Positions 28,386 through 58,000 of a stretch of 64,000 nt of DNA are shown one piece after another (the stretch's first letter is position 1; each line of letters starts with the position of its first letter). Location: contig CM074817.1 of NCBI GenBank assembly GCA_037447605.1, positions 1,488,001 through 1,552,000 on the forward strand. The letters run 5' to 3'. The position numbers were made by a program, and so were the translations under genes. Source of the DNA: Zygnema circumcarinatum SAG 698-1b. Its lineage: Eukaryota > Plantae > Zygnematophyceae. The notes beneath the pieces are model-generated. The model was given only the letters and a program-made list of their open reading frames with translations. It had not been told where the DNA came from and did not search any database.

Positions 28386-31115
28386 TCAGCTGCACAATGT
28401 ACTCGTGAGGGGAACACAGATCTTTAGCCCCACCGTCAAGGCTCTCTTTGTGCATGGGAAACGGTTCAGCTTCCGGAAACTGACCGTTTTGGTGAAGCAT
28501 TTAGACAAACTGGAACATGAATCGCCTTTTTTCACGGTGTAAGATTTGCTCGCCTTGCATTCTGCAGCGGCTCCAAGATCGCCGGCTTCCAGACACACCT
28601 GCAGCAAGGCGAGGGCAGACGCAATTCCTGGTCACAGTCTAGAACACAATTGTTTCTTTCTGCGTCCTCCTCCGCCGCAAAGGCCGACACTTAATCACTT
28701 AATCTACGCCAAACAAATGCAAAGAAACGAAATTTGTTCAAAAAATGCAAACAAACATGGAGTCATGCCCTCCTACGTCCCTACTTTGACCATTGACAAA
28801 GTACCTGCTGGCCAATGGCAGAGCTGCCGCTAGTGGAGAGCATGAGCTTGCCGCAGTACACCCCGGGATTGAGCGTGTAAAACTTCCAAATGCTTCCCGC
28901 AAGATAGTTGCTTATGATAGAGAAGCAAGTTTCGTCCGGCTGGACATCATAAGGCTTCGTGCAGGGGCCCGGATAGACAGGGGAGCCCCTCTGAATGCAG
29001 ACCTGCAGAAACATCCAAACTCACACTTCAGATTCGACGCTTTTCAAAACATGCACCACGTTTGGGACTGTACATGAGTTTACGTGAATAATTTCCGTTA
29101 TTCCTTATCGTGTCCCCTTGGTTACGTAGTCAACAAAGTTTACGCAATTCCATTTTTCAGCGTAGGTAGTACAACTGAACAAATGGTCAATCACAAGAAG
29201 TAGTCGTCCAGGTCATTGTGCAGATCACCTGTACTATACATTTCTATAACATAGGGCTCATGTAGATTAGAGTTTTGTAGTGTTCTTTTCTTCTCATAAG
29301 GATTGATTCTTGTGGTAGTAGGGGTTTGACCCCTTCCAAGTTCACTAACTGTACCTGCTGGAACGGCTGAAGCCGCGAGCAGTCAAAGTCTGGATTGGGA
29401 GACCCGGGGCCATATATAGAGGGAACTTTGAAATGTGTTGCGATTGACTCACACGTATCATCCTGAAGAAAGAAAAAGGTAGGAAAGTCGAATTTCGACT
29501 GCGACGTCAAAAGTTTGCCAGCAGCTGACTCGGAGGACATTTGCAGGGAGGACCTTGAACAGTTAAAAATGGGGTCCCAAGGCACAGAGGCTGACCTCAT
29601 TGACAGCGTAAACCAAAGAGCAATTTTTGAAATTGGTGACATTCACCACCGTATCTCCCGGCAAGGGCAAACCGCAATTCAGATTCTGTGAAGTGGATCA
29701 AAGATTGTGGCACGAATGCAGAAAACGTGAGTTCAATGGCCTCATAGGAGGGGAGCAAAAGACCACCACAGCTTACTCCATTCCGCAAACATGACTACAT
29801 GAGTTACAGAAATTGAGATAAAACTAAGGGAAGTCACCGTTCGCCAGAATTGAGTAGTATCTTGCTGACCTGGTTTTGGGCTTGGAATTCTGTCTTGCTG
29901 ACGCCATACATGTTGTAGATGTCGTAGCAACTCATGTTGGTGCCGGTCGGCACCGAAAAGGTTTTTGGCCCATTTGCCAATGTAGCTGGAAAAACGATAA
30001 TTGCAGCCTTAGAAATGAGCTAGAGAAGAAGTGCAGATTTCACCTCGTTCGAGTATATCCCTATCATTGATGTATTCAAAGCGAAGGCCAAGTATGATTT
30101 GCATAGCTTCTAATAGCAAGTCATCACAGAATAAGGTCATGTTTGACTCGAAACCGTATTTGGAGCACTCAGATATCTCCTTTAATACTTAGAACCCCTG
30201 CTGACACTAGTATGAACAAAACTCCTCATATGCAGCTACTTCATACTACTTCTTTTTCTTACTTATTTTTCTTCTTCTTACTTCTACTTTCTTTTTTTTC
30301 TACTTCATTCAGGTTTTCGCTGCCTGCTTTGTGCCCCCACCTGGCACGCAGGTGAGCGAGCCATCAGGAGAGTCCGGGGCATAGCCGAAGGGGCAAGCGC
30401 ACACGTATGTGCCCATAGGCGAGGCCGCATTCAGGCATGTGCCCACACCGCAGGGGTTGCGGGCAGCAAAGGTGCAGGGGGAGACTGCCCCGAAAAAAAA
30501 AAACAAAAAAACGAAAAAAATCGTTCGTTAAAAAGTATTCAAAGACTTTGTAATGAGTTTAAGAAGTGCAGGGGGAGACTGCCCAGAAATAAATTTAAAA
30601 AAAATATCGTTCGATGAAAAGTATTCAAAGAGTTTGTAATGAGTTCAGGAATTGCAAGATTTCAGGTCGAAGCATTGAACAATGTTTGGCTTTTTACTTA
30701 GATTTGAAAAGTTCTTGTGTGTTGAAAAATCATGGTTGAAAAAATAGTTATCAGAGTGCGCATACAAAGCGGTGGAACAGTTGGCAAACTAAAGGAGGGG
30801 ATAACGCAAACAAGAGAAGCCATTGTTTGCTTCTCATCCGCTAGCAGTCTTTGGCTTTCCATCTCACATTACAAATCGTAAAGATCTGCTCGATGAAGCA
30901 AAAGATCAGATTAGTCAAACGGCAAACTAACTTACTGGGTGCGCATGTTTGGGAGTTGTCAGTGTTGTTCACAGCCACGAATCCTGTGCGACATCGACAC
31001 AAATTTGTGTTTCCGGAAGGAATGCATAGACCATTTCCGCAGGGGTTCATGGCTCCAGGGCCACTCCCACTCAGAACAACAGTTGCATAGCTGCTATAGA
31101 AGCAAGGATCATTGC
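28386..31115 (-). CDS. Mosaic gene: two EGF-like domains and four Cys-rich LysM domains
   Basis: EGF: [23 protein letters not shown] and [26 protein letters not shown]. LysM: [74 protein letters not shown], and a divergent first copy. Confidence 0.85.
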
Positions 31116-34100
31116 CTGCATCCGACCGACCACAAAAAGACACACATAACATTCTCGCTTGCTATCGTGAGCTCATTGAATATGACCTTAAACTTGTTAT
31201 CATCACTAGCCGAGAAGTTAGAGGAGCTCGTCTTCTGCGATTTGAGGATGCGTGACAAGGAAGAACACGTGTAAACGTTTGTTTCGTCGTCTCTATTTTT
31301 AATTAAAAAAGTCAAAACTTGTGAGAGGATATTCACTCACTTAAAGGCTTCACTACCGGCATGAGAGCCGGAAGACTGTTAATTCCGCATATCCCATAAC
31401 CGGCGGATATTTTGAGCCGCATGTAGCCCTGTTCGCCCCAATTTCGACCCCACGAGTTGCGGATGATCCAAAAGGGTGGATCCGCGCTCAAGTCGTATCC
31501 GACCACCACCACGCTGTGATCCACTCCGTTGGAAAAGCACTCGTCATCGTCAAACACTCCCTGCAGCACATCGTATCTCAATTCTGAAAGCAATGAGTGA
31601 TAGAAGGAAAATGACTCAAATTTTTCGTATGTAACATGCAGCATAAGTTATAGTGGCGCCAAATCCTGAGTGCTGAGTGGCTGTGGGAAGGAGGAAATGG
31701 GGCTAAAGCTCTTATCATGATCCAAATAAACGCATATACAGAAAGTCTTCACGTGAGTGCTTACATAAAACCTCCTTCCTGAAGAGGCACGCTATGCAGA
31801 AAATGTCCAACGATTACAAGATTGCAAGGCTATAAATTTGTTTATGGCTTTACTCCGTTGTAATTGATGAAGTTGGGACTGCTCGCTTCAATATTCACAA
31901 TGGCCGGTTGCTGCTGCAGAATGAGCAATAACCCCAACCAGCCGTTGAAGGCTACTTGCTCAAACGATGTGATTTTGAACGTGTTATCACCCTGTAAGCG
32001 ACCCACTCATATTGAATCTGAGATCTCTAAGATAATCAGTTTTAACCATAAAAATGTGCCTTGAAGATAAAATGTTCTTTACAACATTTGAAACAAAGCC
32101 AGTTCTCAATAAAACACACCAAACCCTAATCATCTCTGAAACCTTTTCAGGAAACTTGGAAACAAACTCGGCTCTTTTCTGATTAGCATCAGAGGCACGC
32201 CAAAAATCCCGGACCAAACTTCTATGATGATCTCTGAGTCAAAAACCTATCCGACAATTCAATGGCATCATTTGCTATCTACTTGCCTGCACACAGCTCC
32301 CTTGTCCTGTGAAGTTCGAGTATAAAATAAGGCTTTTGTTGGCGGCATAGTCAAGAGCTTCTTGGGGCCATCCCCCCCCCTCGCAGGTCTTGCCGGAGGG
32401 AGAGCAGGTCAGGACCTGCTGCTCTGCCAGCTGCGGGAGAGGAATCGATCCACCATTGGCAATGAAAATTGCGCTTTCAATGGCAGATATTGGAGCAAAA
32501 ATCCAACAGGTTCCTGCACATAATCCACGTCAGAATAAGACTTCTGATCATTGCAGATGCGGTAAGACCTAAGGTTTGCGTGCAGGTTTACAGAGTGCGT
32601 TTTGTATGGCGAAACGGTTCACGAATGTTTGCTTATTCGTTCGTTTGTTCGTTTTCCAGCTTTCCCAATCGTCTTCTGCCATGCCATCTTCAATGGAAGC
32701 AGCTAAAATAAAAAGAGAGAAAATATTAGAAGCAAAGGAACGAACGAACGAACGAACGAACGCTTGACTTTCAAGTGGTCAAGAAGGAGGGGGGTAATTA
32801 CTGCAGAGAGTCTGATCCTTGATTCCTTGCACGGCTCCCTCTTCAGTCCAGTTCCAAGAAATTGCGACCTGCCAGGATGACTTGCCGCTCTTCCTCCTCA
32901 AATATCCCGTCGTCGCGTATCGGAAGAAACGGTTCAAATATGAGGACTTTTGGATTGGTAGACTCGAGTTTAGGCCAAACCCTCGTCCCCCTACACTTTA
33001 CATAGAAATGTTGTTAACTGAGATCATGATGCACAATATGCATAACGTGATCATGTTGGGTTTTTCTCACTGTGACTATCTCTCCAGCAAAAGAGACAAA
33101 CGTAGATGCTCAACATTGCGGGCAACTTCAGTCACAAACCTGATTCAGCTCCTTCAGACCACAGGATACTAAAAAAAAGCCACAAGCCATGTCCAGAGCA
33201 GAACTAATAATAACAAGAAGAGATTTGAGAATCTCACCAAAAGTGCAAGTGTATGCATCTGCAGAGTTGTCATAGCCTGCATCACAAGCGCAAGTTGGCC
33301 GGCTTCCATTGAAAAAACAGGCCCCATTGCCCCCACATGCACCCTGAGGCTGGCTCGCATTGCAGAAGAAATTGCATGTGGCCGCATCTCTTTGGTCGCT
33401 GCAGGTATCGTTTGAAAAGCAGTTCGTTTCAATGCCAGTGCAGTCCCTTTCCTGGCCGTTCACGGTGATGGAGAATTCTTCCGAAAAGTAGTTGTTGTCG
33501 AAGTAGAAAGCGACGTCTTCAAGTAATCCAAAGTCAAACACCAGTGGTCCTGCGAGAAGGTTGTCTGCTAGCGACCTGCAGAAAGTAGGGTATCTGCTTG
33601 CTTCAGATCACAATGATTCTTTGGGGAGGAGCTACTTAGAGAATATTGGCCGTCTCTTTGTTGTGGTGGGGTTTTTTTTTTTTCTGGTCTGCTAGCTGCT
33701 GTTTGCGAAGGTATGTGAAAGTTGAAGAGTGAAAGACAAGTATCTGCTTCAAAACTGATGGTTTCTTCTTGCTTCCGCCTTGGCCAACACACTAATCCGT
33801 TATCCATGGATTTGCATTCAGAAAAGCACAAAGTTCAGTTCGCCCACATCTGTGTTATGGACTGGAGCCCTCCAAAGGTCGATGGAATATTGCCGGTCAG
33901 TTGATTGTTGCTCAAAATCCTGCCACACGAGAGATACCCATCTCAATTTGGGGTCTCTAGTTGGCCTTTCATTAAATGGTCGAGGTATCCAAGCACATAC
34001 AGATTCAGAACGAAGCTGTTTTCAAGTTCAAGGGAAGTGGTTTTTATTAATATGAATCGTTTCATTTCCGCCACATTTCATTTTCCTTCCGCATCTTTAT

Positions 34101-37100
34101 GTTTGCTGTCGTAGAGCCGTTAGGGAGTTTGGAACGTGATAGGGTCACATACAATTGGCTTCGTACACAATGACTCACAGAATTTGAAGGGCTCTGAGGT
34201 AGCCAATTGACGCAGGAATTGGACCGCTTAGCATGTTGTCGGCAACATTTCTGTACGACCGACAAGCAGCAACTTCAAGCATGAACCATATTCCAAGCGG
34301 ACCACTGCTCAAGTGTAAGATTTTTATAACAAAGAAAACTACAAACCAGGATTTTTTTCTAGCTGATATAGGTCCATTTTTTATTAGGAGAAATGTTTAC
34401 ATATTTTAGCTCTGACACTTCCACAAGCTTAAAAAATGTTTATCAACTATCCCGTGCCTATGTAAGAATTAAAAGATCATTTGGGTGCTATGACCGAGAT
34501 TCTGATTGCTCGGAAACATAGTTGAATCAGCAGTCAGAAGAACTTTTGCTATCGTCCTTCTTCTAATGCAGTCGGTCCGAAAGCCGCTTGAACACACTTC
34601 ACAAATGCTGCTTATAAGGATTTTCATTTTCCAACTACTAAAATATCCTTCCCACAAACCGATTGCTGCAACTAAGACGCAAGTGACTTAGATTGTACCA
34701 TTTGGAGACACGTACTGTCTGTCTCCGTTTTCCCGCAACGTGCACGAAGTATTTCTACAGTGTTGAACTTCTTTACGCATATGTCTACGATGACAGATTA
34801 CAAGTGGATCACAAGTCGGACCAGTGGATCGGCAACCATTGGACAACCACTGGATGGCAATGGGTGTCCCATGGTTCGCAACCATTCAACCAATGGTTGC
34901 CAATCATTTGCACCCACTGGTTCGCAACCAGTCGAGTGGTTGGTCTATTGGTCCGACCTGTTGAGTGGAAGTGTTTTAGCAAGCGTCGATCTGAACTTGT
35001 ATGCTTTCCCGTTTATACAGAATCCAGCGATCAGGAATCACTGGCACTTACAGTTCTTGAAGAGAGGTCAGGTTGCGAAAGGCTGAGGGGAGTCCACCCG
35101 TCAGCTTATTATCTGACAAAATTCTGCGCATCATCCAATGTTAGCAAACCAATTATTTTCAAAAGTTCCTAGAAGTATCTGACAAAATTCTGCGCATCAT
35201 CCAATGTTAGCAAACCAATCATTTTAAAAAGTTTCTAGAAGTATCTGAAAAAATTCAGCGCATCATCCATTGTAAGCAAACCAATCATTTTAAAAAGTTT
35301 CTAGAAGTATCTGACAAAATTCTGCGCATCATCCATTGTAAGCAGACTAATCATTTTCAAAAGTTTCTAGGATTATCTGACAAAATTCTGCGCATCATCC
35401 AATGTTAGCTAGCCAATCATTTTAAGACGTTTCTACAAGTATCTGACAAAATTCTGCGCATCATCCATTGTAAGTAAACCAATCATTTTAAAACGTTTCT
35501 AGAAGTATCTGACAAAATTCTGCGCATCATCCAATGTTAGCAAACCAATCATTTTAAAAAGTTTCTACAAGTATCTGACAAAATTCTGCGCATCATCCAT
35601 TGTAAGCAAACCAATCATTTTGAAAAGTTTCTGAACGAAAGCGAATATACGACTGCAATTTATACTATCAGCACAGGGGAAAAAAAGGTGGTCGAACTAG
35701 CAAAGCCATGGCTTTCTCCAAGTGCAGGTTAGGAGTATTTAGGATCTTTAGGGTTTTTAGTACTTAGGGTTTCCTTCGGCTTTTAGGGTTTTAGAGGCAT
35801 AGCAGATGATCCTAAGAGAGAGGGAAGGAACCATACAGTCTCTTTAACTTTTGAAGTCGACCAATGCTGTCAGGAATGATGCCCATAAAATTGTTGTTCG
35901 ACAAATCCCTGAATCATTTCAAACAACGGAGTATGTGACCTAAGAAACGAATATTCGACATAGAACAAAATAGAAACATCACAAAGACTTTAGATCTCCC
36001 GACAATAATAGGTGTTACAGATGCAATGATCTGCCTGTACGGGTTTCGCATTTCTGGGTTGTACATTGTTCAGAAGTGAGTGCAGGGTCTGATCGAAGTG
36101 GGGCTCCATTGACTGGTGATAGGATTCGTCAAGATTTAATTAACCCGTCATTCTTTTCCATTTATCAACGGAAGTCAAACTCACAATTCCTCCAACGTTG
36201 CTAGGCTGCCAATGGAGGGCGAAATGCTGCCATTCAGTTGGCTTCCACTCAACTTTCTGCCAACACAGCCACTTGCCCTTCAGTTCGCCAAATTGGTGAT
36301 CTTCAACTAGAAGGCAATGCACATTAGTTATTTACATTCAACCACAGGTATTCATTCTCCGTTGAGTATAGATTGATGATTACAAAAATAGCAAATTATA
36401 ATTAGAAAGTGACTCTATTGAGAAAGAGGCTGTCACGGTCTACAACGACTACAAGGATAAAGAGCGATCCGCAACCAATCCTCCGTGGTGCCACGACCGG
36501 AAAACCACTAAATGGAAACTAAGGAAGCAGCTGCATCTGACCTAAAAAATATTTTGATGCAAAAAACGTTATAACTATTTCAATCATAGGACTGCGAGAG
36601 CAAGTGATTCAAGACATCCATCACAGAAAAATGTGAAAGGGGAAATGCAAGATGCTCACATTTTGGTTATTACTTTGGGTGAACCTGTGCAGAATACGCC
36701 CCACCAGCTGCATACGGGATCTTTAGAAGGGTCCCAATTCTTGAGATACTTTTGAGGATTCGTGATGGCCATCTTGAACGCCAAAAGAATGACGGCTGCA
36801 TCATGGCGTTCTCCCAACAATTCAACAGAAAATATGTCTCATCGTCAATTACTTGAGCTTGCTCTCACCATGATCCCACCCGTGCTGCTCGAAAATTCAC
36901 GGAATTGTAAAATCGGCAGGCCGGCGTTTGCAAAGCAGATTCCAGCACCTTCCAACGATTATGGAAAGACTCTTTCAGAGCTGGACTCCACTCACTAAAA
37001 AGAGGTAAAATGGGTTCAGTTACAGTATTTGCCCACAGTCCCAAATACAAGTCAAAAATATGCAATCAGAGTGAAACTACTCCGTGTCCCCATTGCGAGT

Positions 37101-40100
37101 GTCGTTTAGGTCAGCCACGAGAAAAATGAATATTCATGCGGCGATCACCAAAACTCATGCACTCTCACTTGCACCTTGAGCAGCAAAGTATACAAAGAGC
37201 TGACTTTGCCCGTACTATTGCCATGTCTCAACAATGCCTGGAAGCCCCACGGCACATGCGGCTTGTGCTCAGAAGACTTGTTTCTTCATGCGCACCGCAG
37301 CTATTTTCAAAGTTAAAATGTTAGAATCGGGCAAGGTTCTCAGCTGTACTTGACAATATCATTCGCTATAAAACTGACACTTCTATGGACAGATCAATAA
37401 AATCTGAAAGAGACGGAGAAGTGTATCTTCCCTATCTAGTCCTAAATTGAAACACTTCGTTTTGTATGGTGATTCATTATTCGTTATCGTTAGCGTGCAA
37501 TGTTACTATTACTTTTAGCGTGCAATGTAAGCCTTTCAAATAAAAAGATCGAAAGGTAAAGGTGAGGAGGAATGAAGCATAGAAACTTTGTTGATGAGTC
37601 TTATAATAGGGGTAGTCAGACATTGACCATCGCCAAATCAATTAAGCAAGCCTGTCGGGCGAATTAAGCATTGGCTAGATACGCATTTCGGTACGGCTGT
37701 TTACGGCGGAGCCGCGGATCCCGACCCGGAATTACTTTGACTTTTAGTACAGTACTGTATACTGTACTGAATTCGGGAATTTAGTACGGCCATGGTCAAT
37801 GTCTGACTCCCCCTGATAGTGTATCGAAAGCAAGAAAGGGTTTTGGTTGAAATCATGAGACCAGCCGCGACATGCATATATGTGTCCATTACCTTCTGGA
37901 GAAAGTGGCGGCGGCGGTGGCCGTCGTGGAGGGGGTCGTGGTGGCGGGGGTCGAGGCCGCGGCGGAGGGGGGCGAGGAAGGCGAGGGGGGGGTGGAGAAG
38001 ACTCTGCGAGAGAGCACAAGGAGCACACAAAATAGCTCACAACAATCGCCAATTTCTGAGAAAAGCACACTAACTTTCTTGTCTCAGAATTGACAAGCGT
38101 TTTCTTGCAACAGCAACTCCAATCGGAACCGTTTGTTTCCCTGAATTGGACCATTAGACATGTTAAGAAAACATGAGGCTTATTTTTTTCCGTTTAAAAT
38201 GGGGAATGTAGAGCTAAGAAAATAGTTAAGTAACTAAGTTGAAAGAAGCGTTCAGAATCCTCAATCATTGCAGCCACTACCTCCTCAAGCAAAAATGGAC
38301 ACTCAAACTAAAGAAGCTGTGGTGACTTACTTCTGCGTATGTATGTGTGAGCAGAGCTACTCTCTGTGGGAGACATTATTGAAGATTTCAGCCAACATTG
38401 GAACTGGCCTCCGTCTCCGTAACCGTTTCCTTGGGTTATAGAAAAACCGACGCATTGGCACAAGCTTGTACAAAGCTGAATGCATCCGTCCGCAGAAAGA
38501 ACAAAAGCGCTGCCAATGTCATTCAAAATAGCAACTTTATTTGGAACATAGTCGTAAGTCGCAGCTGGACCTCCAACACATGTTCCTGCGCAACCGAACA
38601 TAGTGAAGGAGCGACGCACGTCCGCATATCAGAACATTGGTAAAATAAAAAAAAAATCAAATCATCAATCAATCAATTCATCATCAATCAAAATCAATCA
38701 AATCAATCAATCAATCAATAATCTTGTTCACTTTTTACCTCCCTTGCGACATACAATCTGATCAACTCCTTTTGACAAAGAGAGGAGATGAAGCACTGTT
38801 TCTACCGCCTCTAACAGGATTGGGTTGAAGTAGAGTGGACTACTTGCGGAGAATTCAAAACGTACCTTCGGAGCTTCTAAAAACTTTCACCTCAGTTGAA
38901 GTGAGGGGTTCGCCGCTGCTGAGGTACACCCAGACGAATTTTCCGCGTAGAGCCGAGCACGTCTTGACGAAGGGAAAGCCGATGCTCGTGTTTGAGTACT
39001 TGAAGACGTTACCGGGGTCGCACTCCTGGTTTCCCCCCCCATTGAATGTGGAGTTGCTATCTCCCACCCACACAGCCACTCCGTTCATCCGCTCTTGACA
39101 ACAATCTGTCCGGCCGTACAGCATGACCTTTCCCACAGCCACGGTCGCGAGCAGGTCCACTTTCCACCACTGCGGTGGACCGTTAAGCGTATGCGAGCAT
39201 GTAAATCCTTCCGTAGAGCAGCCGCCATCACCTAAGGAGCCGTCCACCGCTTTCAGTGCTGAAAATTTTAGGAGAGTGCTGGACTGAAAAGCGGGTCTGT
39301 TGAAAGCCAAATCGCCTGCCATTCCCATTACCCCACATTTGATTCCAATGGTGTAAGTGCAGATTACACTAAAGCATATAAACCAGTAGGTTTAAGCCTG
39401 GCGGAATATGGACATGTTCGCAATAGCCACAGGACCAAACAGCAAAGTATGTCGGAGTTTCGTATACTTCACGAGCCAGTCTTGTCATTGTTTTTTTTGT
39501 GCTGACTGTATCGTTGGCCTATTCCTTTTCCTTTCTTCACCTCCTTATAATCATCTGTGTTGTCTACGAGAGCCAATCCTCTGATAACTAGACCAGCTTT
39601 TCTGCATCGTTTTTGGTTCCCGAATGCGACTATGGGGTTCCAGACGTACCTTCGACCGCTCCTAAAACCGCTCCAAAAACCTTCACTTCGCATAAAACGA
39701 GCGGCCAGCCGCTGAGAACCACCCAAACGAATCGTCCAGCCAACAGGGAGCACTTCTTGACGAAGGGAAAGCCTCTGCTTGTGTCGGAGTAGAAAAAGAC
39801 GTTACTGGGGTCGCACTCCTCGTTCCCGTCGGCGTTCCATGTGGAGTCGTTGTTGCCGATCCACACCGTCACTCCGTTCATCCACTCTGAACAGCAGTCT
39901 GTACGGCCCCACAGCTCGACCGAGTCCACCCTCGCACGCGCCAGCAGGTCCACCCTCCACCAATTGGAGGGAGCACCGAGCGTGTGTGAGCATGTAAACG
40001 TGAAGTAGTCGCCGCCTCCATCAGAGCCGTCCACCGCCCTCCCAGCGACACCACCCCACGCCTCGCTGGACTGCAAGGCAGGTTTCTGCAGAGCCAAATT

Positions 40101-43100
40101 TTCTGCAATGCGGATTCGTGCAAAAAGAGAGATGCAAAAGAAACTTGGCATCGGTAAACCATTGTTGCCTCGTTTGGAAAGAGAAATAGTCATACAATCA
40201 CACGCATCCTATTCATGGGAATACTAAGTCCAAGACGCTCACGGCCTAACCTTTTCTTAGATACTTTTTTGTACCAGTCGGCTAAGCATGATGTTTGACG
40301 ACCAACAGCACTACAAACCGAATTACTGTTTCGTAAGGAACGATGGTTGCATTAGCTCACATTCTCTTGCAAACCGAGATGCAGGTAGGAGTGGGAAAAA
40401 GAGCGGAAGGCGTACCTCTAGGGCCTCCAAAGACCTTCACTTCACACAAAGTGAGGTAGTCGCCGCTGCTGAGGTACACCCAGACGAATTTTCCGCTTAT
40501 AGACGAGCACTTCTTGACGAAGGGAAAGCCGATGCTCGTGTTTGAGTACTTGAAGACGTTACCGGGGTCGCACTCCTGGTTTCCCCCCCCATTGAATGTG
40601 GAGTTGCTATCTCCCACCCACACAGCCACTCCGTTCATCTCCTCTTGGTTAGCAACTGTCTGGCCGTACAGCATGACCGAGTCCACAGTCGTGGTGGTGA
40701 GCAGGTCCACTTTCCACCACTGCGGTTCACCGTTAAGCGTTTGTGAGCATGTACGAGTGTCTGCCGTGTAGTAATATCCATCACCATAGTAGTTGTCCAC
40801 AGCGTTTTGTGCCACAAGAATAGTGCTGGACTGAAAAGCTGGCTTCTTGAGAGCCAAATTGCCTGCAATACCCATTATGCCAAAATTGATTCCAATAAAT
40901 GTAAAATGCCTATTGGGCTTGGCTTGGCGGAAAGGAAAAATGCTCTGGTAACAAAGCTAGAGAACCGAATAAAAACGATCTCGGAGTCTGGTGTACTTCA
41001 CGATTCAGTCTTTGCATAACTTTCTGTGCTGACTGTATTGTATACGTATTTGTTCATGATTCATGTTCATGTGAGCAGCTTTATTATCTGGCTGAATCAA
41101 TCCTTTGATGGTTGGACCAGCTTTTCTGCACCTGTAGTAAATAGAAACCTTGAGCTAGCTTGGAGCACATACCCATGTCTCGTCGAATGTACAATATTCT
41201 GTTCGTTGTAGTCCTCCATTCTGAGACAGGACGAGTGTTGAGCTTTTTCCAGCACGAAAAGCTGCCATCACTTCTTGGAGGATATTCGATCACAAAAGCG
41301 ATGCAGCTGCAAGCGCTGTTGCAGGAAGCTTCGCACTCCGTCGCTGACGTTACAGTCAAGTTGGACAGATCAAAATCTGCTGACTCCAGATTATCATATC
41401 GGTCATATTCGTTCAAGAGTCCGGCACAATGGTAAGAATCACGCTCTACAAAACATAGCAGAAAGGTAATTGGTTAGAGGGTGGAAATGGTCGCAATCTC
41501 AGTCAGTCCAAAAAGATCATCAAATCACCAATCTCAACTTAAGAATCTCAAGCTTTTCAAAAGGCACACTTTTTCAATCCAGCGAAAAATCTTGCGGTTC
41601 GTTTTCTTTTCACCCTCGTCGTCTCTCCCTCACTCGACCCCCGCCTTCCCGTGTTTTCTATAACTATGTTCTTTAACAGTTTCTTGCAATGCCCACTCAG
41701 ATTAAACGGTTCATTTCCCTTGATTGACCAGCTTATGCTGTGAAAATAGTGAGGCTCCATTTTGGTTTTTTGTTCCAAACTGAAAGCAAAGGTTTCTTCG
41801 TGAGTCTATTTCTCAATCTGGAGCTAAGATTGACCCGAACTTAGAAGATGTTGATGACTTACTTTCGCGTACATACATGTCACCAAATGCAACGCTCTCT
41901 AAGTTGGCAATATCATACTTTAGCCAACAATTGAGTCCGCCATCCCCATCACTCGTACGAACTCCGAGGCATTCGCAATAGCTGGTGCACTGAGCAATGC
42001 AATCTTCAACGGATGACACAAGGACATATTTGAAGTCGTACCCCCAATTTTCACTGTTAGCCAAATAGCGGAACGTATCTTTTAGGCCTGCACATTCTCC
42101 TGCACAGCCAGGATCGCGTGTACAAATCAGTATCTCAGGTTAAACCGTTCGGGATCGTAATTCTTGGAAGAGGTGGAGATGCAATTGGTGAGGAAGGCAG
42201 CAAGACTACACAAGCCGACACGTCAGCTCATAAAAAGTCTCACAAGTTTTCTTGTTTTCACTATGAACCATCAGGAATAGCCGTGGCTACGTTCAACCAC
42301 CGTAGCAACTTACAAAATTGAAAGAAGAGAAATATTAGATTGGACTGTTTGCTTTCTTCAGTTGGAGTCTCTATACATGTGAATCTTAAGGCATCATGAT
42401 ACTTCTATCCAGCAGCAAATGTTTAAAACACTTCAACATGGCAGACACTCTCTTCGCGCAGCAATACTAACTCAAAAGATGTGGGGACTTACTTGTCCGT
42501 ATGTATGTGTGAACAACGGTACTAGTCGTGAGAGGAGCTATTGCATATTTCGAAAAACAGGTGAACTGGCTCCCGTTTCCGTAACCTGCCCCTTGGCTTA
42601 CGACGAATCCAACACACTGGCAAAGCCCTGCGCAGAACTGAGCGCATTCCGCCACAGATGAGACATAGGAGAGACCGATGTCATTCCCCAAAGCATCTGT
42701 ACCTGCTGCATAGTCAAACGTATCTCCAAGGCCTGGACATTCTCCTGCAGAGGCAAAAAACGAGGAAGGAGCGAGTGCAAGTATGCAGATCAGTATCTCG
42801 GACACATCTCAATTGACTTTAATAGTGGCTTATGTCTCCCACTGCACTTTAAAGGCGGAGTTGGACGGTGCAGAATGGAATAGGACTACAAGCAGAATAG
42901 CCAGCTTATGAAAAAGCAGGCAATTTTTTTCTGCTGTGAAAGAACACAGCAGTAATAATGTGAAATCAACGCAGATTGAAGTGGTTATATTTCCTTAGTT
43001 GAATCGTGGGGTACAAGTTGAACTCGAGTTACTCTTCCAACTTCAACCTATCCCGCACATTCGTCATGACTCCCTCCTCACGCAGTCACAGTCTTCTGCC

Positions 43101-43476
43101 CTTCCACTCTCCATTCTCTCTTTTTTTCAATTCAAGATTTATCCCTGCTTCCCCTCTCCCATTTTCCTTCTCCACTCCCCCTCTCTCCTCCTTATCTTCC
43201 CGCATTTCCTCACGACCTCCCACTCCTACCACTTTCTCAATTCTTCCTGAACCACACTCTCTTTCTCCTCGACTCTCCTTTCTAGCAATAAGGCACAGGC
43301 TACCGCCCCCACTCTCAGCGTCCATGTCCGCGAAGCCCCCCTATTTTCCTCTCCTCGTCCCATCCCCCTCTCCCTCCTCTCTCTTTCTCACACTCCTGCC
43401 CTACCGACCCACCTTGCGCCCGTCCACAAGTCACAGCGAGGATGACCAGAGCTGCAAAAGCGAACCACTGCGCCAT
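28386..43476 (-). CDS. Secreted mosaic protein, 1708 aa, 26 exons: SP-PAN x3-F-type lectin x3-PAN-Pro-rich-LRRNT-LRR x5-EGF-papain C1A-EGF x2-LysM x4
   Basis: Exons, 5' to 3' on minus: 43413-43476, 42493-42744, 41863-42099, 41173-41445, 40416-40862, 39650-40102, 38866-39315, 38331-38585, 37893-38003, 36660-36795, 36185-36256, 35837-35908, 34179-34250, 33848-33919, 33238-33575, 32802-32990, 32287-32513, 31854-31991, 31341-31560, 30936-31115, 30341-30484, 29870-29985, 29596-29685, 29355-29462, 28805-29002, 28386-28598. Sum is 5127 nt, all phases are compatible and there is no internal stop. The start context is GCCGCCATGG. All introns are GT-AG except one GC-AG. Confidence 0.8.
31341..32990 (-). 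CDS. Mosaic gene: papain-family (C1A) cysteine protease domain
   Basis: [32 protein letters not shown] (oxyanion Gln, catalytic Cys), [32 protein letters not shown] (His), [20 protein letters not shown] (Asn), GICGIN. Confidence 0.92.
33238..36795 (-). CDS. Mosaic gene: plant-type LRR N-cap, LRR repeats and EGF-like domain
   Basis: [37 protein letters not shown] is an LRRNT_2-type cap. Four 72-nt phase-2 exons read [72 protein letters not shown] and [24 protein letters not shown]. Then [11 protein letters not shown] and the [25 protein letters not shown]. Confidence 0.88.
34811..34961. mobile_element. Putative MITE with 13-bp terminal inverted repeats, in an intron of the mosaic gene
   Basis: ACAAGTCGGACCA...TGGTCCGACCTGT (1 mismatch) with internal AACCA/TGGTT/CCAATGG palindromic units. 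Same family as 45471-45706, in opposite orientation. No target-site duplication found. Confidence 0.6.
35110..35633. repeat. 66-bp minisatellite, 8 copies, intronic
   Basis: TATCTGACAAAATTCTGCGCATCATCC.. units start at 35110, 35176, 35242, 35308, 35374, 35440, 35506 and 35572. Confidence 0.95.
37893..38585 (-). CDS. Mosaic gene: fourth PAN domain and Pro/Arg-rich (SPPPP) linker exon
   Basis: [32 protein letters not shown] followed by [36 protein letters not shown]. Confidence 0.8.
38866..40862 (-). CDS. Mosaic gene: three F-type lectin (fucolectin, F5/8-C fold) domains
   Basis: NLAL.KPA.QSS..AVDG..CSHT..WW.VDL..V..V.L.GR.DCC.E..EVKVF. The copy at 38866-39315 has the exact H-x26-R-x-D-x4-R F-type motif ([35 protein letters not shown]). 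Confidence 0.88.
41173..42744 (-). CDS. Mosaic gene: three PAN/Apple-like domains, one per exon
   Basis: Pattern D(I/F/L)....(V/T)SS..EC...C...C.C..F......C..K in all three, e.g. [33 protein letters not shown]. Confidence 0.78.
43413..43476 (-). CDS. Mosaic gene exon 1: signal peptide [21 protein letters not shown]
   Basis: Strong start context, a hydrophobic core, small residues near the likely cleavage site, and a phase-1 GT donor. Not present in the ORF track. Confidence 0.8.
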
Positions 43477-43811
43477 GGCGGCAGGATCCTGCAAAACCTA
43501 AAAACGCCAAACCGAGCACCACAAGAGTCAATGCTACCGTACTTCAACTTTACGACAAAACCTTTTTTAAGTGCATTGCTCTTGGCCTCCCCACTTGGTT
43601 TACATACAGAATGAAGGGCACTAAACTTAACACATATCACCCCCTACCAGACTTCGCTTCCCACACTCCATTCCCCCCTTCAACAGCCTCCTCTCTCTCC
43701 CTCCGTCTTCCGCCGCTCGTCCATTTGCCTTCCCCTCGACGGCCCGCCCTTCATCTCTCCCCGCCTTCATGAATTCCGCGAGTTCCAAAATCCGCACAAC
43801 ATTCAGCGGCC

Positions 43812-43813
<2 letters not shown>

Positions 43814-43870
<57 letters not shown>
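43814..43870. repeat. (GA)n microsatellite upstream of the mosaic gene start
   Basis: Visible dinucleotide run. Confidence 0.95.
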
Positions 43871-49550: not shown

Positions 49551-50163
49551 TCCCTGAAAGGAAGAAATGACGATCTGCCACGTGTCGTTCAGTTAAGGGG
49601 CATGATGATCTCGAACATATGCGATACATTCGTCCAAACCCTAACAATGCAGCCCTGTCCCTTTTCATTGGTTTTTTAGTTAGGGTTTCGTGCTGGATTG
49701 GTCATCAGACTCAATAAACTTGAGTCGCTTGCAAAGGAGATGGAGATAGGGCTATCTTCCTCTCCCGACATGCGCCGAGCGCTTTCAAGAAACGCAATTT
49801 ATCCAAACAAACGGGACAAGCGGCTTAAAGCAAGTTCCTGGGTCAAGTCAACTTGCAACTTTTCCCGCACGCCGGCATGCGGCATTCAAACCCAAAGGCC
49901 CAAGTGCCTCATGCCATAAACCACAAGCCAATATCCGACTCTTTCGTAGTCTTCGAGCGCCCTTAGCCCTGACACCCCCCTGCCCTCCTCCACCATCTAC
50001 ACTCTCCAGCAAGGTCAATGCCCTACCAGAAATTAGGCCTTCTAGGTCCAAAAGCTTCAAGCCCTCTCAGACAACTGCACAGCTGGCGGGCCCTGTGCAG
50101 CCGTCAGGCGAGCTACGGAAGCCCCTCTCCCTCTCTCCCTCACCCTTTCTCTCTCTCTCTCTC

Positions 50164-53759
<3,596 letters not shown>

Positions 53760-53861
53760 GTTCTCCCTGGTGAGAGTTTAGGCTGCCCCTCGCACTGAGA
53801 GCAGGCCGTTGGCTATCGACAAATACACTCGACCACCGTCCAATGGCGATTCGTACATTTC

Positions 53862-55033: not shown

Positions 55034-58000
55034 ATGCGCCGCTCCGCGCACACCGGGACCCGCTCCCGCTCGCTCTCCACGTCGCTGTCGGCACCTCCCT
55101 CGGCGCGCGCTGATTGGCCCTCGGGGGGTACGTCGCCCTCCGAAGCATGCGCCCACAAAACGGAAGCCGCCTCGGCATGGCCCACCATGGCATGTGACGG
55201 CCCGCCCATGTCCCATGCCATGCCATGCCATGCCATGCCAGCCATGAGGCGGCGTCCCCACGACCGTGCCATGCCGGGCCGTACGGACGGCGTCAGGAGG
55301 ACACGGAGCGTGCGGCGAACGGTCAGAAAGCGGCGCCCTCTGCCAACGGAATATTTGAGCAGTGTCGGCGCACGTGCGGCAGTTAGCGCGCCGTTAGCAA
55401 ATTTGGCGGGCCGTTCCGCGGGACGGCGGGGAATCTGCGGCGATACAGGGACTCCCTGGCACTTGGCAGAGGCAGATGCTCTGCTGCAGGAGCAGGGGCG
55501 GGAGGGGGTGGGAGAGAGAGGGAGAGGGAGAGGGAGAGAGAGTGAGGAGGGAGAGATACAGAGCTTCATGTCGGGACGGTTAAGGAAAGGCGGGGGTAGA
55601 GCTGCAGCTGATCTGAAGGGGCAAGGAAGTGAAGCGTTGCTTAGGGGCGTGAAGGGGAAGAAAGCGGCTTCAAGTAGCTTGAGTGTGGGATTCATGGCGT
55701 TACCGTCAGGCTTGGCCTGCTTGCCGGCTATGGAAGCTGGCTCGCTTGCGGCTTGTATCATGCGATCGTTGGATTGTTCACTTGGCGAAATGCAGCAGGA
55801 GGCAGGTGGCCGTTGTTTGCAAGGAGCTTCATGTGGAGCAATGGATCCCCCTCGGCAATGTAGCATTGCGGAGTTTGAACTGCCGTCATTTGGCAGAGAT
55901 CCTGCCGGTGCTATTAGACACTCTGGAGTGATTCTTTCTGCATTAGGTGGGAAAAGTCAACAGGGTGCATGTGACTTGGATGAGGAAGCAGATGAAGCGA
56001 CGTTGGATTATTCGTCTCCGCTTACTTCACCATCTCCTCCTTCATCGCCTGTCTCTCCTCTACCGGCTCAGCACATTCCGTACATGTCGCCTGAGCGTGC
56101 AGCAGCCATACTACGGAGTATCGCTCTTGCAGGGTCTGCGAAAGGGGGACCTAGGGCCTTGACTGGGCTTCATAATCTCGGAAACACCTGTTACATTAAC
56201 GCGTGTGTACAATGCTTAAGTAACTCGGCTCCTTTAGCGCTCTATTTTCTTAAGGAAGCTGCAAAAGGTTCCATCACGAAAGGAACTGGCATCCTACCAG
56301 TTGATTCTCGAGTGACAGGAGTGCATCAGCGGCTATATGCGTCACAGAGCAGTTTTGATCTTGGATGCAAGGATGATGGTAGGCGTCGGAGCAACTGGGA
56401 CGATTTGCAACTTCCGAGAATTGGCCTGGCGGGAGGTGGTCGAGAGTCACCTTGCAACGCAGTTGCTCATGCAGAAGAATCACCCCGTTCAGGAGCCCTA
56501 TCTGAGAGTTGCTTATCCTCAAGTTTTGGCCAATTATTAAACGAAATGTGGTCGGCTAAGCCAATGTCAGCCCTCTCCCCGTGTGATCTTCTCAAAAGTG
56601 TACAGAGCCACGTCTCGCAGTTTGCCGGATATAGACAACATGATTCTCAGGAGTTTCTACGCTCATTTATGGAAAAGCTGGATGAAGAATGCAGTCAAGT
56701 GAAGGTGCATTTCTACACCTTTGAGGAATGCAGCTAACCTGATCAGTTTCAATATAGTGCCACTGATCGTGTTGGTCTTTGCTGTTTCACTTGTTTTGCT
56801 GCATCGTTTTACTGTGAACCCTTGTGTCAGGATTAGTTAGTTTCTGCTCGAGTTCTCTTGTGTGGCATTGGGGACTTCGCTGTGAGCATCCTCGCCATCT
56901 TTCCTGCAGATTCATGCTGAAGTCTTTACCTTTATGTTCTTTTTAAGGCTTAGGTCTATCCTCTGTTGACGTCGGACAGCTGAATTGAAGAGATTTGGAC
57001 TGCCTTAACGATTCTTCTGCATGACTCGATGGTTGAACAGACAACTGTGGGGAGCGTTTCATCGGACGAATTGGACAAGCTGTCAGAAGCAGACCAAGCC
57101 AGGGCATATTGGGATATGCATATGGCAAGATATAAGAGTCCAATCCAAGATATTTTTTGTGGTAGGTTTTAATCTTCTCTGTGTTGCATCCCTTTTGCTC
57201 GCTGGCATCCTGTTAGCATAGGAGGAAAGGACGGCTTTCTATTTTTGTGTGGGTGCCATGTAATCGTGATCACTTCTGGTCTGAGGGTTTCTGTAAGTTC
57301 TAAAGTTGTGCGTTTCAGTGATTGACAAAACATCTGGCTGTGTCACATAGAATGTAAGCTGGTTTTGTACGGTGCCCGCAAAGATTGGACAGTTGATGAA
57401 GTGTAGGGGTTGCTTTTAATCTGGGTGCTTCTTTTTCCACCGATCTGGCCATGTTCATCTCCATTAATTGTGACCAATTTACTGAACAGCTCTCATCGCC
57501 CTGTTGCAGGCCAACTGCAGAGCACTATTGAATGTAGGTCGTGCAGGCGAAGGTCACACTGCTTCGATCCCTTTCTTGATCTATCTCTCCCAATTCCAAA
57601 GCAGAGTGGTTCAAAGAACGTCACTTTAATGGACTGCGTTGCTGCTTTCATGAGCGAGGAACGGCTGGAAAATGACAATGCTGTAAGTGAAACCTTGATG
57701 ACGGGTTAGGACCCGACATAAACCTTGATATCTGCTTAAACTTCGTTTAACATGGCTACTCCACTAAATGAAGGATATACTAGAATCAGTCTGGAGTTTG
57801 ATGTGACTGTCAGTTTCAGACCATTTGGACAAGCCTCTGATTCATGGTTGTGTAAGCCAGTGCTCTGACCCTTGCAAACATGATCTGTGCATGTCTGCAG
57901 TATCACTGCAGCAACTGCAAGTCCCCACAGCCTGCAGTCAAAAAGTTCAATATTTCGAAATTCCCACCACTACTGGTGTTGCATGTGAAGGTATTCTTGC

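Follow-up and report, generated by a model that had tools for sequence, protein, structure and literature searches.

A predicted secreted papain-type protease with PAN, F-type lectin, leucine-rich repeat and LysM modules in the streptophyte alga Zygnema circumcarinatum

Secreted modular proteases that bear carbohydrate-binding modules are a known kind of protein. Plasma kallikrein, factor XI, factor C and the MASPs are S1 zymogens activated by cleavage within cascades, and plant proteases of the RD21 type, which belong to the C1A (papain) family and have a role in immunity, carry an I29 prodomain and a C-terminal granulin but no lectin, leucine-rich repeat (LRR) or LysM domains. We describe here a gene of Zygnema circumcarinatum SAG 698-1b, found in a stretch of 64,000 nucleotides (assembly GCA_037447605.1, contig CM074817.1, positions 1,488,001 to 1,552,000; hereafter the window, in which positions are counted from 1), whose predicted product joins a C1A protease to PAN, F-type lectin (FTL), LRR, EGF and LysM modules on a single chain. 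This combination of domains is unusual.

Like kallikrein, factor XI, factor C and the MASPs, the Zygnema protein places binding modules ahead of a protease on one chain, and its PAN profile matches the apple domains of kallikrein and factor XI; here, however, the protease is of the C1A family and has no recognizable zymogen device. With the RD21-type apoplastic proteases it shares the plan of a secreted C1A domain followed by a Cys-rich noncatalytic module, whereas I29 is absent here and lectin, LRR and LysM domains are present. Bacterial LysM-NlpC/P60 hydrolases of the LytE/LytF type and metagenomic protease-FTL fusions are, similarly, secreted peptidases that repeated LysM or FTL domains direct to a glycan surface, but their catalytic families (C40, M12 and S8) are different, they are of prokaryote type and they lack LRR, EGF and PAN domains. 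The LRRNT_2 cap, the 24-residue LRRs and the LysMs with Cys-containing linkers recall the LRR ectodomains of the SERK/BAK1 type (cap plus five LRRs) and the LysM ectodomains of the CEBiP/LYK type. Unlike these plant receptor ectodomains, the Zygnema product has no membrane helix, glycosylphosphatidylinositol (GPI) signal or kinase, mounts its modules on a protease and has four LysMs rather than three.

Among green algae, chlorophyte receptor kinases are reported to have composite LRR/LysM/F-lectin ectodomains (PMC12757656), and green algae and moss have proteins on record that combine a peptidase with LysM (PMC2728734). According to a later paper (PMC2474614), which cites Amon, Haas and Sumper 1998, VcPap-11 of Volvox carteri is a C1A protease induced by pheromone and by wounding that falls outside the cathepsin B, F, H and L groups. 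The likeness consists of a green-algal C1A protease in one case and of a peptidase joined to LysM in the other; PAN, F-type lectin, LRR, EGF and polyproline-stalk modules are not reported there. Volvox is a chlorophyte, whereas Zygnema is a streptophyte alga, and the Volvox protease is said to carry chitin-binding repeats. The literature searched contained no paper on the whole architecture. The statement in the initial annotation of this locus that no such protein had been described thus holds for the architecture as a whole, but it has to be qualified for the pairing of peptidase and LysM, which is on record in green algae (PMC2728734).

Gene structure and transcripts

The exon chain was rebuilt independently, with canonical GT/AG borders, compatible phases and uninterrupted domains as criteria. 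It runs on the minus strand from an ATG at 43476, within a GCCGCCATGG context, to a stop codon ending at 28386, and comprises a coding sequence of 5217 nt in 27 exons that specifies 1738 aa with no internal stop. All introns (26 of 26) have GT..AG borders, exons are richer in GC than introns (51.9% vs 41.4%), and the stop-free minus-strand segments between 28386 and 43497 already show the full module series. The order of domains is signal peptide, three PANs, three F-type lectins (FTL1 to FTL3), a fourth PAN, a polyproline stalk, an LRR N-terminal cap (LRRNT), six LRRs, one EGF, the papain (C1A) domain, two further EGFs and four LysMs. The initial annotation had given the same ends, strand, domain order and boundaries at 37893 and 36795, all of which were reproduced exactly, and its list of domains agrees with the profile, PDB and alignment matches reported below. 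Its exon chain also stands, but its count of 26 exons and 1708 aa does not, because a phase 0-0 exon of 30 aa (29685-29596) appears to have been skipped; likewise, the five LRRs counted then are six, the sixth lying inside the EGF1 exon. The added exon, number 24, is predicted to complete LysM1 and to provide the first strand of LysM2, and a LysM4-seeded profile finds the motif Y-x-V-x3-D-x-C-x2-I across the exon 24/25 junction only when this exon is included. Within the protease, the junction 32283/32005 is favored by collinear alignment with intronless metagenomic papains. The alternative junction 32293/31991 between the second and third C1A exons, which would yield 1730 aa, was rejected for shortening a loop and adding gaps relative to three of the four best-matching intronless papains.

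The segment of greatest gene-boundary risk (32750-38700) was covered with contigs from two runs of two studies, X1 and X2. The runs were labeled RNA by guess; contigs that lack the introns and agree with the exons letter by letter can in practice be taken as transcripts. Spliced contigs are 100% identical to the window, with no differing letters, and include nine joints inside this segment. A single X1 contig of 1440 nt runs without mismatches through PAN4 (to 38331), the stalk, LRRNT, the five LRR exons, the LRR6/EGF1 exon and the first C1A exon, in this order, and its loose end of 184 nt was located at 32483-32512, at the 5' end of the second C1A exon, which carries the catalytic Cys. In another X1 contig, PAN4 is preceded by FTL3, represented by a loose end located at 38868-38897 (the 3' end of FTL3). 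X2 shows the same joints as X1, and every joint is bordered by CT..AC on the plus strand, i.e., GT..AG on the minus strand. Contigs thereby confirm 11 of the 26 introns, from FTL3 through the stalk and the LRRs into the second papain exon, so that structure and transcription of the middle third of the gene are direct observations. A transcript end between 37893 and 36795, which would divide the locus into two genes, was looked for specifically. Since a spliced contig spans the stalk-LRRNT junction, there is, as first proposed, one gene and not two, and the head-to-body region is confirmed as part of a single real, transcribed nuclear gene.

Nearly every domain is encoded by its own symmetric exon. 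Exons 2 to 9 are all of phase 1-1 and hold exactly one domain each, the LRR exons are of phase 2-2, EGF2 and EGF3 are again 1-1, and the LysM exons are 0-0 from exon 24 on. Judged from this layout, one domain per symmetric exon would be the pattern expected from exon shuffling.

The intron between stalk and LRRNT (36796-37892, 1097 nt) has features of its own. X2 holds three short unspliced contigs in it (36791-36986, 37238-37396 and 37411-37569), which could be pre-mRNA, retained intron or DNA traces. Contig depth on 37526-37724 reaches 87-193, compared with about 10 on exons, and several contigs break at 37648-37651 into unrelated sequence. The probable source is a transcribed repeat or a piece of a transposon that is also present elsewhere in the genome; within the 64-kb window, the sequence occurs only once.

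Domain identities

Peptidase_C1 (PF00112) matches two exons at 37.4 and 67.3 bits (cut-off, 20.7), PDB matches are C1A proteases (ficin, ervatamin, actinidin and cathepsins K, S and H), and the joined domain aligns collinearly over ~215 residues with intronless papains. Gln1185, Cys1191, His1331 and Asn1351 stand in conserved motifs at the places of papain Gln19, Cys25, His159 and Asn175, with Cys1191 aligned to residue 25 of mature ficin. Alignment with ficin, papain and the intronless homologues extends to the GG motif, to Trp1353 and to the full set of three disulfide pairs of papain. With its catalytic residues intact, the papain domain is apparently active, in keeping with the active-type protease announced in the initial annotation. 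A metagenome scan with the last papain exon returned 12 loci, all of them ordinary intronless papains without LysM, EGF or LRR. In a further search, a profile made from the two papain-exon cores aligned to a 603-aa metagenomic papain open reading frame, a design that says nothing about the absence of the gene's relatives from the collection, gave at least 120 matches; those listed were scaffold relatives and kinetoplastid-type cathepsins, with no LysM among them.

The main oddity of the protease is its missing prodomain. On the 62-aa exon upstream of C1A, no Pfam family, I29 included, reached E<=0.1; 47 residues separate the last Cys of EGF1 from the mature C1A N terminus, and no zymogen activation site was recognized. 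The I29 prodomain is typical of cathepsin L-like members and is not required for C1A membership. C1A proteases normally need it for folding and latency. Without it, the enzyme may be constitutively active, fold by an unusual route or be blocked by its short linker.

In the head of the protein, FTL1 to FTL3 pass the Pfam cut-off for F5_F8_type_C_2 (27.8 bits) at 40-51 bits. PDB matches of FTL3 are striped-bass FBP32 (E 7e-25), eel agglutinin 1K12 (1.5e-11) and the S. pneumoniae fucolectin-related protein (1.3e-10), and its fucose triad is intact in the alignment (His617/Arg644/Arg651, within the motif His ... Arg-x-Asp-Cys-Cys-x-x-Arg). FTL2 retains a partial triad with Trp in third place (His464/Arg491/Trp498), and FTL1 has lost both the triad (Gln316/Gln343/Glu350) and the Cys-Cys pair. 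The nearest relatives of each of these domains are the other two (57-73% identity, against at most 42% outside). With the FTL3 exon as query, 1.84 billion representatives yielded 150 multi-lectin proteins, mostly animal and metagenomic, none above 47% identity and none with a C1A, PAN or LysM match to the gene model. Three metagenomic, secreted-type proteins (P0034, P0124 and P0073), in which an M12/astacin-like metalloprotease or a subtilase is fused to three to four tandem F-type lectin domains, are among the matches closest to the algal lectin domains (42-47% identity). F-type lectin domains have been found in green algae and are not reported from higher plants (PMC5712786).

The alignment of the four PAN exons reveals six Cys residues that are invariant in all copies. 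Single-exon Pfam scores of the PANs lie at or slightly below the cut-offs; with the four-PAN profile, plasma kallikrein and factor XI are matched in their apple domains (E 1.5e-6 to 3e-4). The stalk that follows is basic and has a single SPPPP, then PPPPR-type repeats.

The exons of FTL1 (40416-40862) and FTL3 (38866-39315) have 70-86% DNA identity except for a block of ~150 nt at 99-100%. This block corresponds to the C-terminal half of the domain, outside the decayed sugar triad, and suggests that gene conversion has acted recently between these tandem exons. Of the 150 lectin matches, a single one also matches the LRR part of the gene, namely, P0130, a metagenomic protein of 2456 aa with an LRRNT_2 cap, many plant-type LRRs, three F-type lectins, fibronectin type III and DUF6443.

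In the body of the protein, the LRRNT_2 score exceeds its cut-off (39.2 vs 20.7 bits), and the best PDB matches of the cap are HSL1, BAK1 and SERK1 (E 0.004-0.008). The spliced translation contains six 24-residue plant-type LRRs of the pattern LxxLxLxxNxLxGxIP, five of them on 72-nt exons. The three EGF modules fall slightly below the Pfam cut-offs when taken exon by exon (EGF, 20.7 vs 21.5; cEGF, 22.2 vs 26.6), and EGF3 matches fibrillin cbEGF (E 3.4e-5). A search for homologous proteins with the exon of LRR6 and EGF1 gave no match within the range of protein lengths that it covered. LysM4 matches PF01476 above the cut-off (32 bits vs 20.9); in the PDB it best matches the fungal chitin-binding effector Ecp6 (1.4e-4), and the LysMs of LytE and LytN are also among its matches. 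For LysM3, language-model features lead to LysM clusters only (0.89), and an AlphaFold model of the exon alone was unusable (pLDDT, 44). Self-comparison of the four LysM units detected only the first ~20 residues of each.

Apart from the signal peptide and the lectin strands, no 19-residue window has a mean hydropathy above 1.8. The product has no hydrophobic C terminus and no GPI-type tail, and neither a kinase domain nor a membrane helix occurs in the model. These features agree with the original description of a product with a signal peptide that would be soluble, lacking membrane helix and kinase.

Proposed surface targeting and competing explanations

Our preferred reading, which we hold with somewhat better than even confidence, is that of a surface-targeted secreted protease whose lectin and LysM modules would hold the C1A domain on glycan surfaces, probably microbial ones. 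The product would be a soluble, secreted, heavily disulfide-bonded glycoprotein of ~1738 aa in two halves, with a head (three PANs, three F-type lectins and one PAN) kept at a distance from the body (LRRNT to the four LysMs) by a rigid, basic polyproline rod. The four LysMs and the one intact fucose site, that of FTL3, might anchor the molecule on a glycan-rich surface by many weak contacts, to which the PAN and LRR modules may add contacts with proteins. The C1A domain would then cleave proteins on the bound surface. The binding modules are thus conceived as an address and a means of local concentration, like the carbohydrate-binding modules of microbial hydrolases, and would involve no allosteric trigger.

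LysM domains bind polymers of N-acetylglucosamine (GlcNAc), which are not known from streptophyte walls. A microbial target is favored on this ground, and the most likely surfaces would be those of chitin- or peptidoglycan-bearing microbes, e.g., the chytrid parasites of desmids. The metagenomic fusions of proteases with tandem FTLs (P0034, P0124 and P0073), which exist independently of the algal gene, fit a targeting role for the lectins, and the peptidase-LysM proteins of green algae and moss (PMC2728734) fit an addressing role.

Several points weigh against this reading. Fucose-binding residues appear to be complete in FTL3 only and are lost or partial in two of the three lectin domains. 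LysM1 to LysM3 are divergent and stayed below the Pfam thresholds in the exon-by-exon scan, in which LysM1 and LysM2, being split by introns, were scanned as exon pieces. A linker of only 47 residues precedes the mature C1A, so that folding or regulation may be unusual. The other 15 of the 26 introns (signal peptide to FTL3 and second C1A exon to LysM4) have predicted positions, and secretion, activity, ligands, target and localization are all predictions from the sequence as well. Finally, the choice of a microbial over a self target would follow from analogy alone.

A serious rival, albeit an unlikely one in our estimate, is a role in the alga's own matrix or in conjugation. The protein would bind its own wall or mucilage (fucose polysaccharides, arabinogalactan or extensin-type glycoproteins) and process wall proteins as the alga grows, releases mucilage or opens its wall at conjugation. 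The basic polyproline rod with its SPPPP motif resembles wall-protein spacers, and the gene is expressed at modest depth in ordinary culture-type runs of two studies. Moreover, the sole physiological link reported for an algal C1A protease, that of Volvox, is its induction by sex pheromone (PMC2474614). The LysMs speak for surface targeting of microbes instead, their known ligands being the GlcNAc polymers that are not known in streptophyte walls.

In a broader and rather improbable scenario, the gene would be part of a set of innate-immune effectors in those algae that are most closely related to land plants. LRR, LysM, PAN and lectin modules would there have been wired to a protease, and later to kinases in land plants; swapped heads would provide different microbial addresses, and glycan binding would free an active site blocked by the linker, a single molecule thus both recognizing and attacking its target.

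The model put forward in the initial annotation, a sensor protease of the factor C or MASP kind, latent until its lectin, LRR or LysM modules bind glycan and thereby activate the papain domain, is improbable in our view. Recognition modules do lie on both sides of the protease, and the 47-residue segment might conceivably lie in the active-site cleft and serve as a mini-propeptide. However, neither a zymogen prodomain of the I29 type nor an activation site was recognized, the C1A class differs from the S1 proteases of the factor C/MASP cascades, no downstream cascade partner is known and a coupling between binding and activity has no support, so the triggered mechanism is not upheld. The phrase "three recognition chemistries" used for it is likewise overstated, because two of the three lectin domains lack the full set of fucose residues. 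Holding the protease on its target, as surface targeting proposes, would explain the same anatomy with fewer assumptions than a trigger.

There is a slim chance that the protein is a noncatalytic adhesin or decoy, i.e., that a papain domain without I29 prodomain, embedded in midchain, fails to fold or work and leaves a multivalent binder only; yet a dead enzyme would not be expected to retain the four catalytic residues, including the Gln of the oxyanion hole, together with the GG motif and three disulfide pairs, as this one does. That neighboring genes (a lectin head, an LRR-protease and a LysM protein) were read together by chance is very improbable, for although 15 introns are placed by prediction and X2 holds unspliced pieces of the 1.1-kb intron, the head-stalk-LRR-EGF-protease part is found on single spliced contigs in two studies, the four protease exons align collinearly with intronless papains, and the remaining junctions are phase compatible, with canonical sites and no stop.

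No other algae are as closely related to land plants as those of the zygnematophyte type. In this Zygnema gene, parts known from plant receptors (a SERK-like LRR cap and repeats, LysM and PAN) and a fucose lectin of animal or bacterial style are joined to a papain protease, not to a kinase. If targeting of microbes holds true, the gene would represent an extracellular defense that predates land plants and unites recognition and cutting in one molecule, and it would illustrate concretely how exons were shuffled in the green lineage. It also provides testable material in the form of one lectin domain with an intact fucose site next to two decayed ones and of a protease without the usual prodomain.

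Feature coordinates and neighboring sequence

Table 1. Exons of the Zygnema gene, with window positions, strand and supporting evidence
Feature	Position	Strand	Evidence
Exon 1: start codon (GCCGCCATGG context) and 22-residue signal peptide, donor phase 1	43413..43476	-	Hydrophobic core, A-x-G ahead of junction; predicted splice
Exon 2: PAN1, phase 1-1	42493..42744	-	Pfam PAN_4/PAN_1 below threshold; PAN alignment and profile
Exon 3: PAN2, phase 1-1	41863..42099	-	PAN alignment and profile
Exon 4: PAN3, phase 1-1	41173..41445	-	PAN_2 21.4 bits (cut-off 21.1); PAN alignment and profile
Exon 5: F-type lectin 1 (FTL1)	40416..40862	-	F5_F8_type_C_2 39.9 bits
Exon 6: F-type lectin 2 (FTL2)	39650..40102	-	F5_F8_type_C_2 49.8 bits
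Exon 7: F-type lectin 3 (FTL3)	38866..39315	-	F5_F8_type_C_2 51.4 bits; joint to PAN4 is loose end of X1 contig
Exon 8: PAN4	38331..38585	-	Spliced contigs; Pfam PAN_4 21.8 bits, below threshold; ESM Atlas features lead to PAN clusters (0.95)
Exon 9: basic polyproline stalk	37893..38003	-	Joints 38331/38003 and 37893/36795 in spliced contig
Exon 10: plant-type LRR N-terminal cap	36660..36795	-	LRRNT_2 39.2 bits; spliced contig
Exons 11-15 (72 nt each): LRRs 1 to 5, plant type, 24 residues each, phase 2-2	36256-36185, 35908-35837, 35123-35052, 34250-34179, 33919-33848	-	Every joint in X1 spliced contigs, most in X2 too
Exon 16: sixth LRR, cap, EGF1	33238..33575	-	Spliced contigs; weak Pfam EGF match; Cys pattern in sequence
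Exons 17-20: 47-residue linker, then papain (C1A)	32990-32802, 32513-32283, 32005-31854, 31560-31341	-	Joint 32802/32513 in X1 contig; next two joints predicted
Exon 21: EGF2, phase 1-1	30936..31115	-	EGF-type Pfam matches below threshold; predicted splice
Exon 22: EGF3, phase 1-1	30341..30484	-	EGF 20.7 bits (cut-off 21.5); fibrillin cbEGF match
Exon 23: LysM1, first half	29870..29985	-	Predicted splice; half-domain alone without Pfam match
Exon 24: 30 aa, end of LysM1 and first strand of LysM2, phase 0-0	29596..29685	-	Canonical AG/GT sites; predicted from sequence
Exon 25: remainder of LysM2	29355..29462	-	Pfam LysM E 0.036, below threshold
Exon 26: LysM3, divergent with insertion	28805..29002	-	No Pfam match; ESM Atlas features lead to LysM clusters only (0.89)
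Exon 27: LysM4 and stop codon	28386..28598	-	Pfam LysM 32 bits (cut-off 20.9)

Beyond the gene, a long open exon on the plus strand (55034-56737) encodes the N-terminal part of a UCH/USP ubiquitin carboxyl-terminal hydrolase domain (74.8 bits) and belongs to a neighboring gene on the other strand; this exon has no close relative in the protein collection. A dinucleotide microsatellite of ~3.7 kb, (TA)n followed by (TC)n, occupies 50018-53773. The 1251-aa open reading frame that runs over it, made of Ser-Leu and Tyr-Ile repeats, was rejected as spurious, and its Pfam match is an artefact of composition. Closer to the gene, a (CT)n run of ~30 units lies at about 43806-43870, in the promoter or 5' untranslated region, at a distance of 330-400 bp from the start codon on its upstream side.

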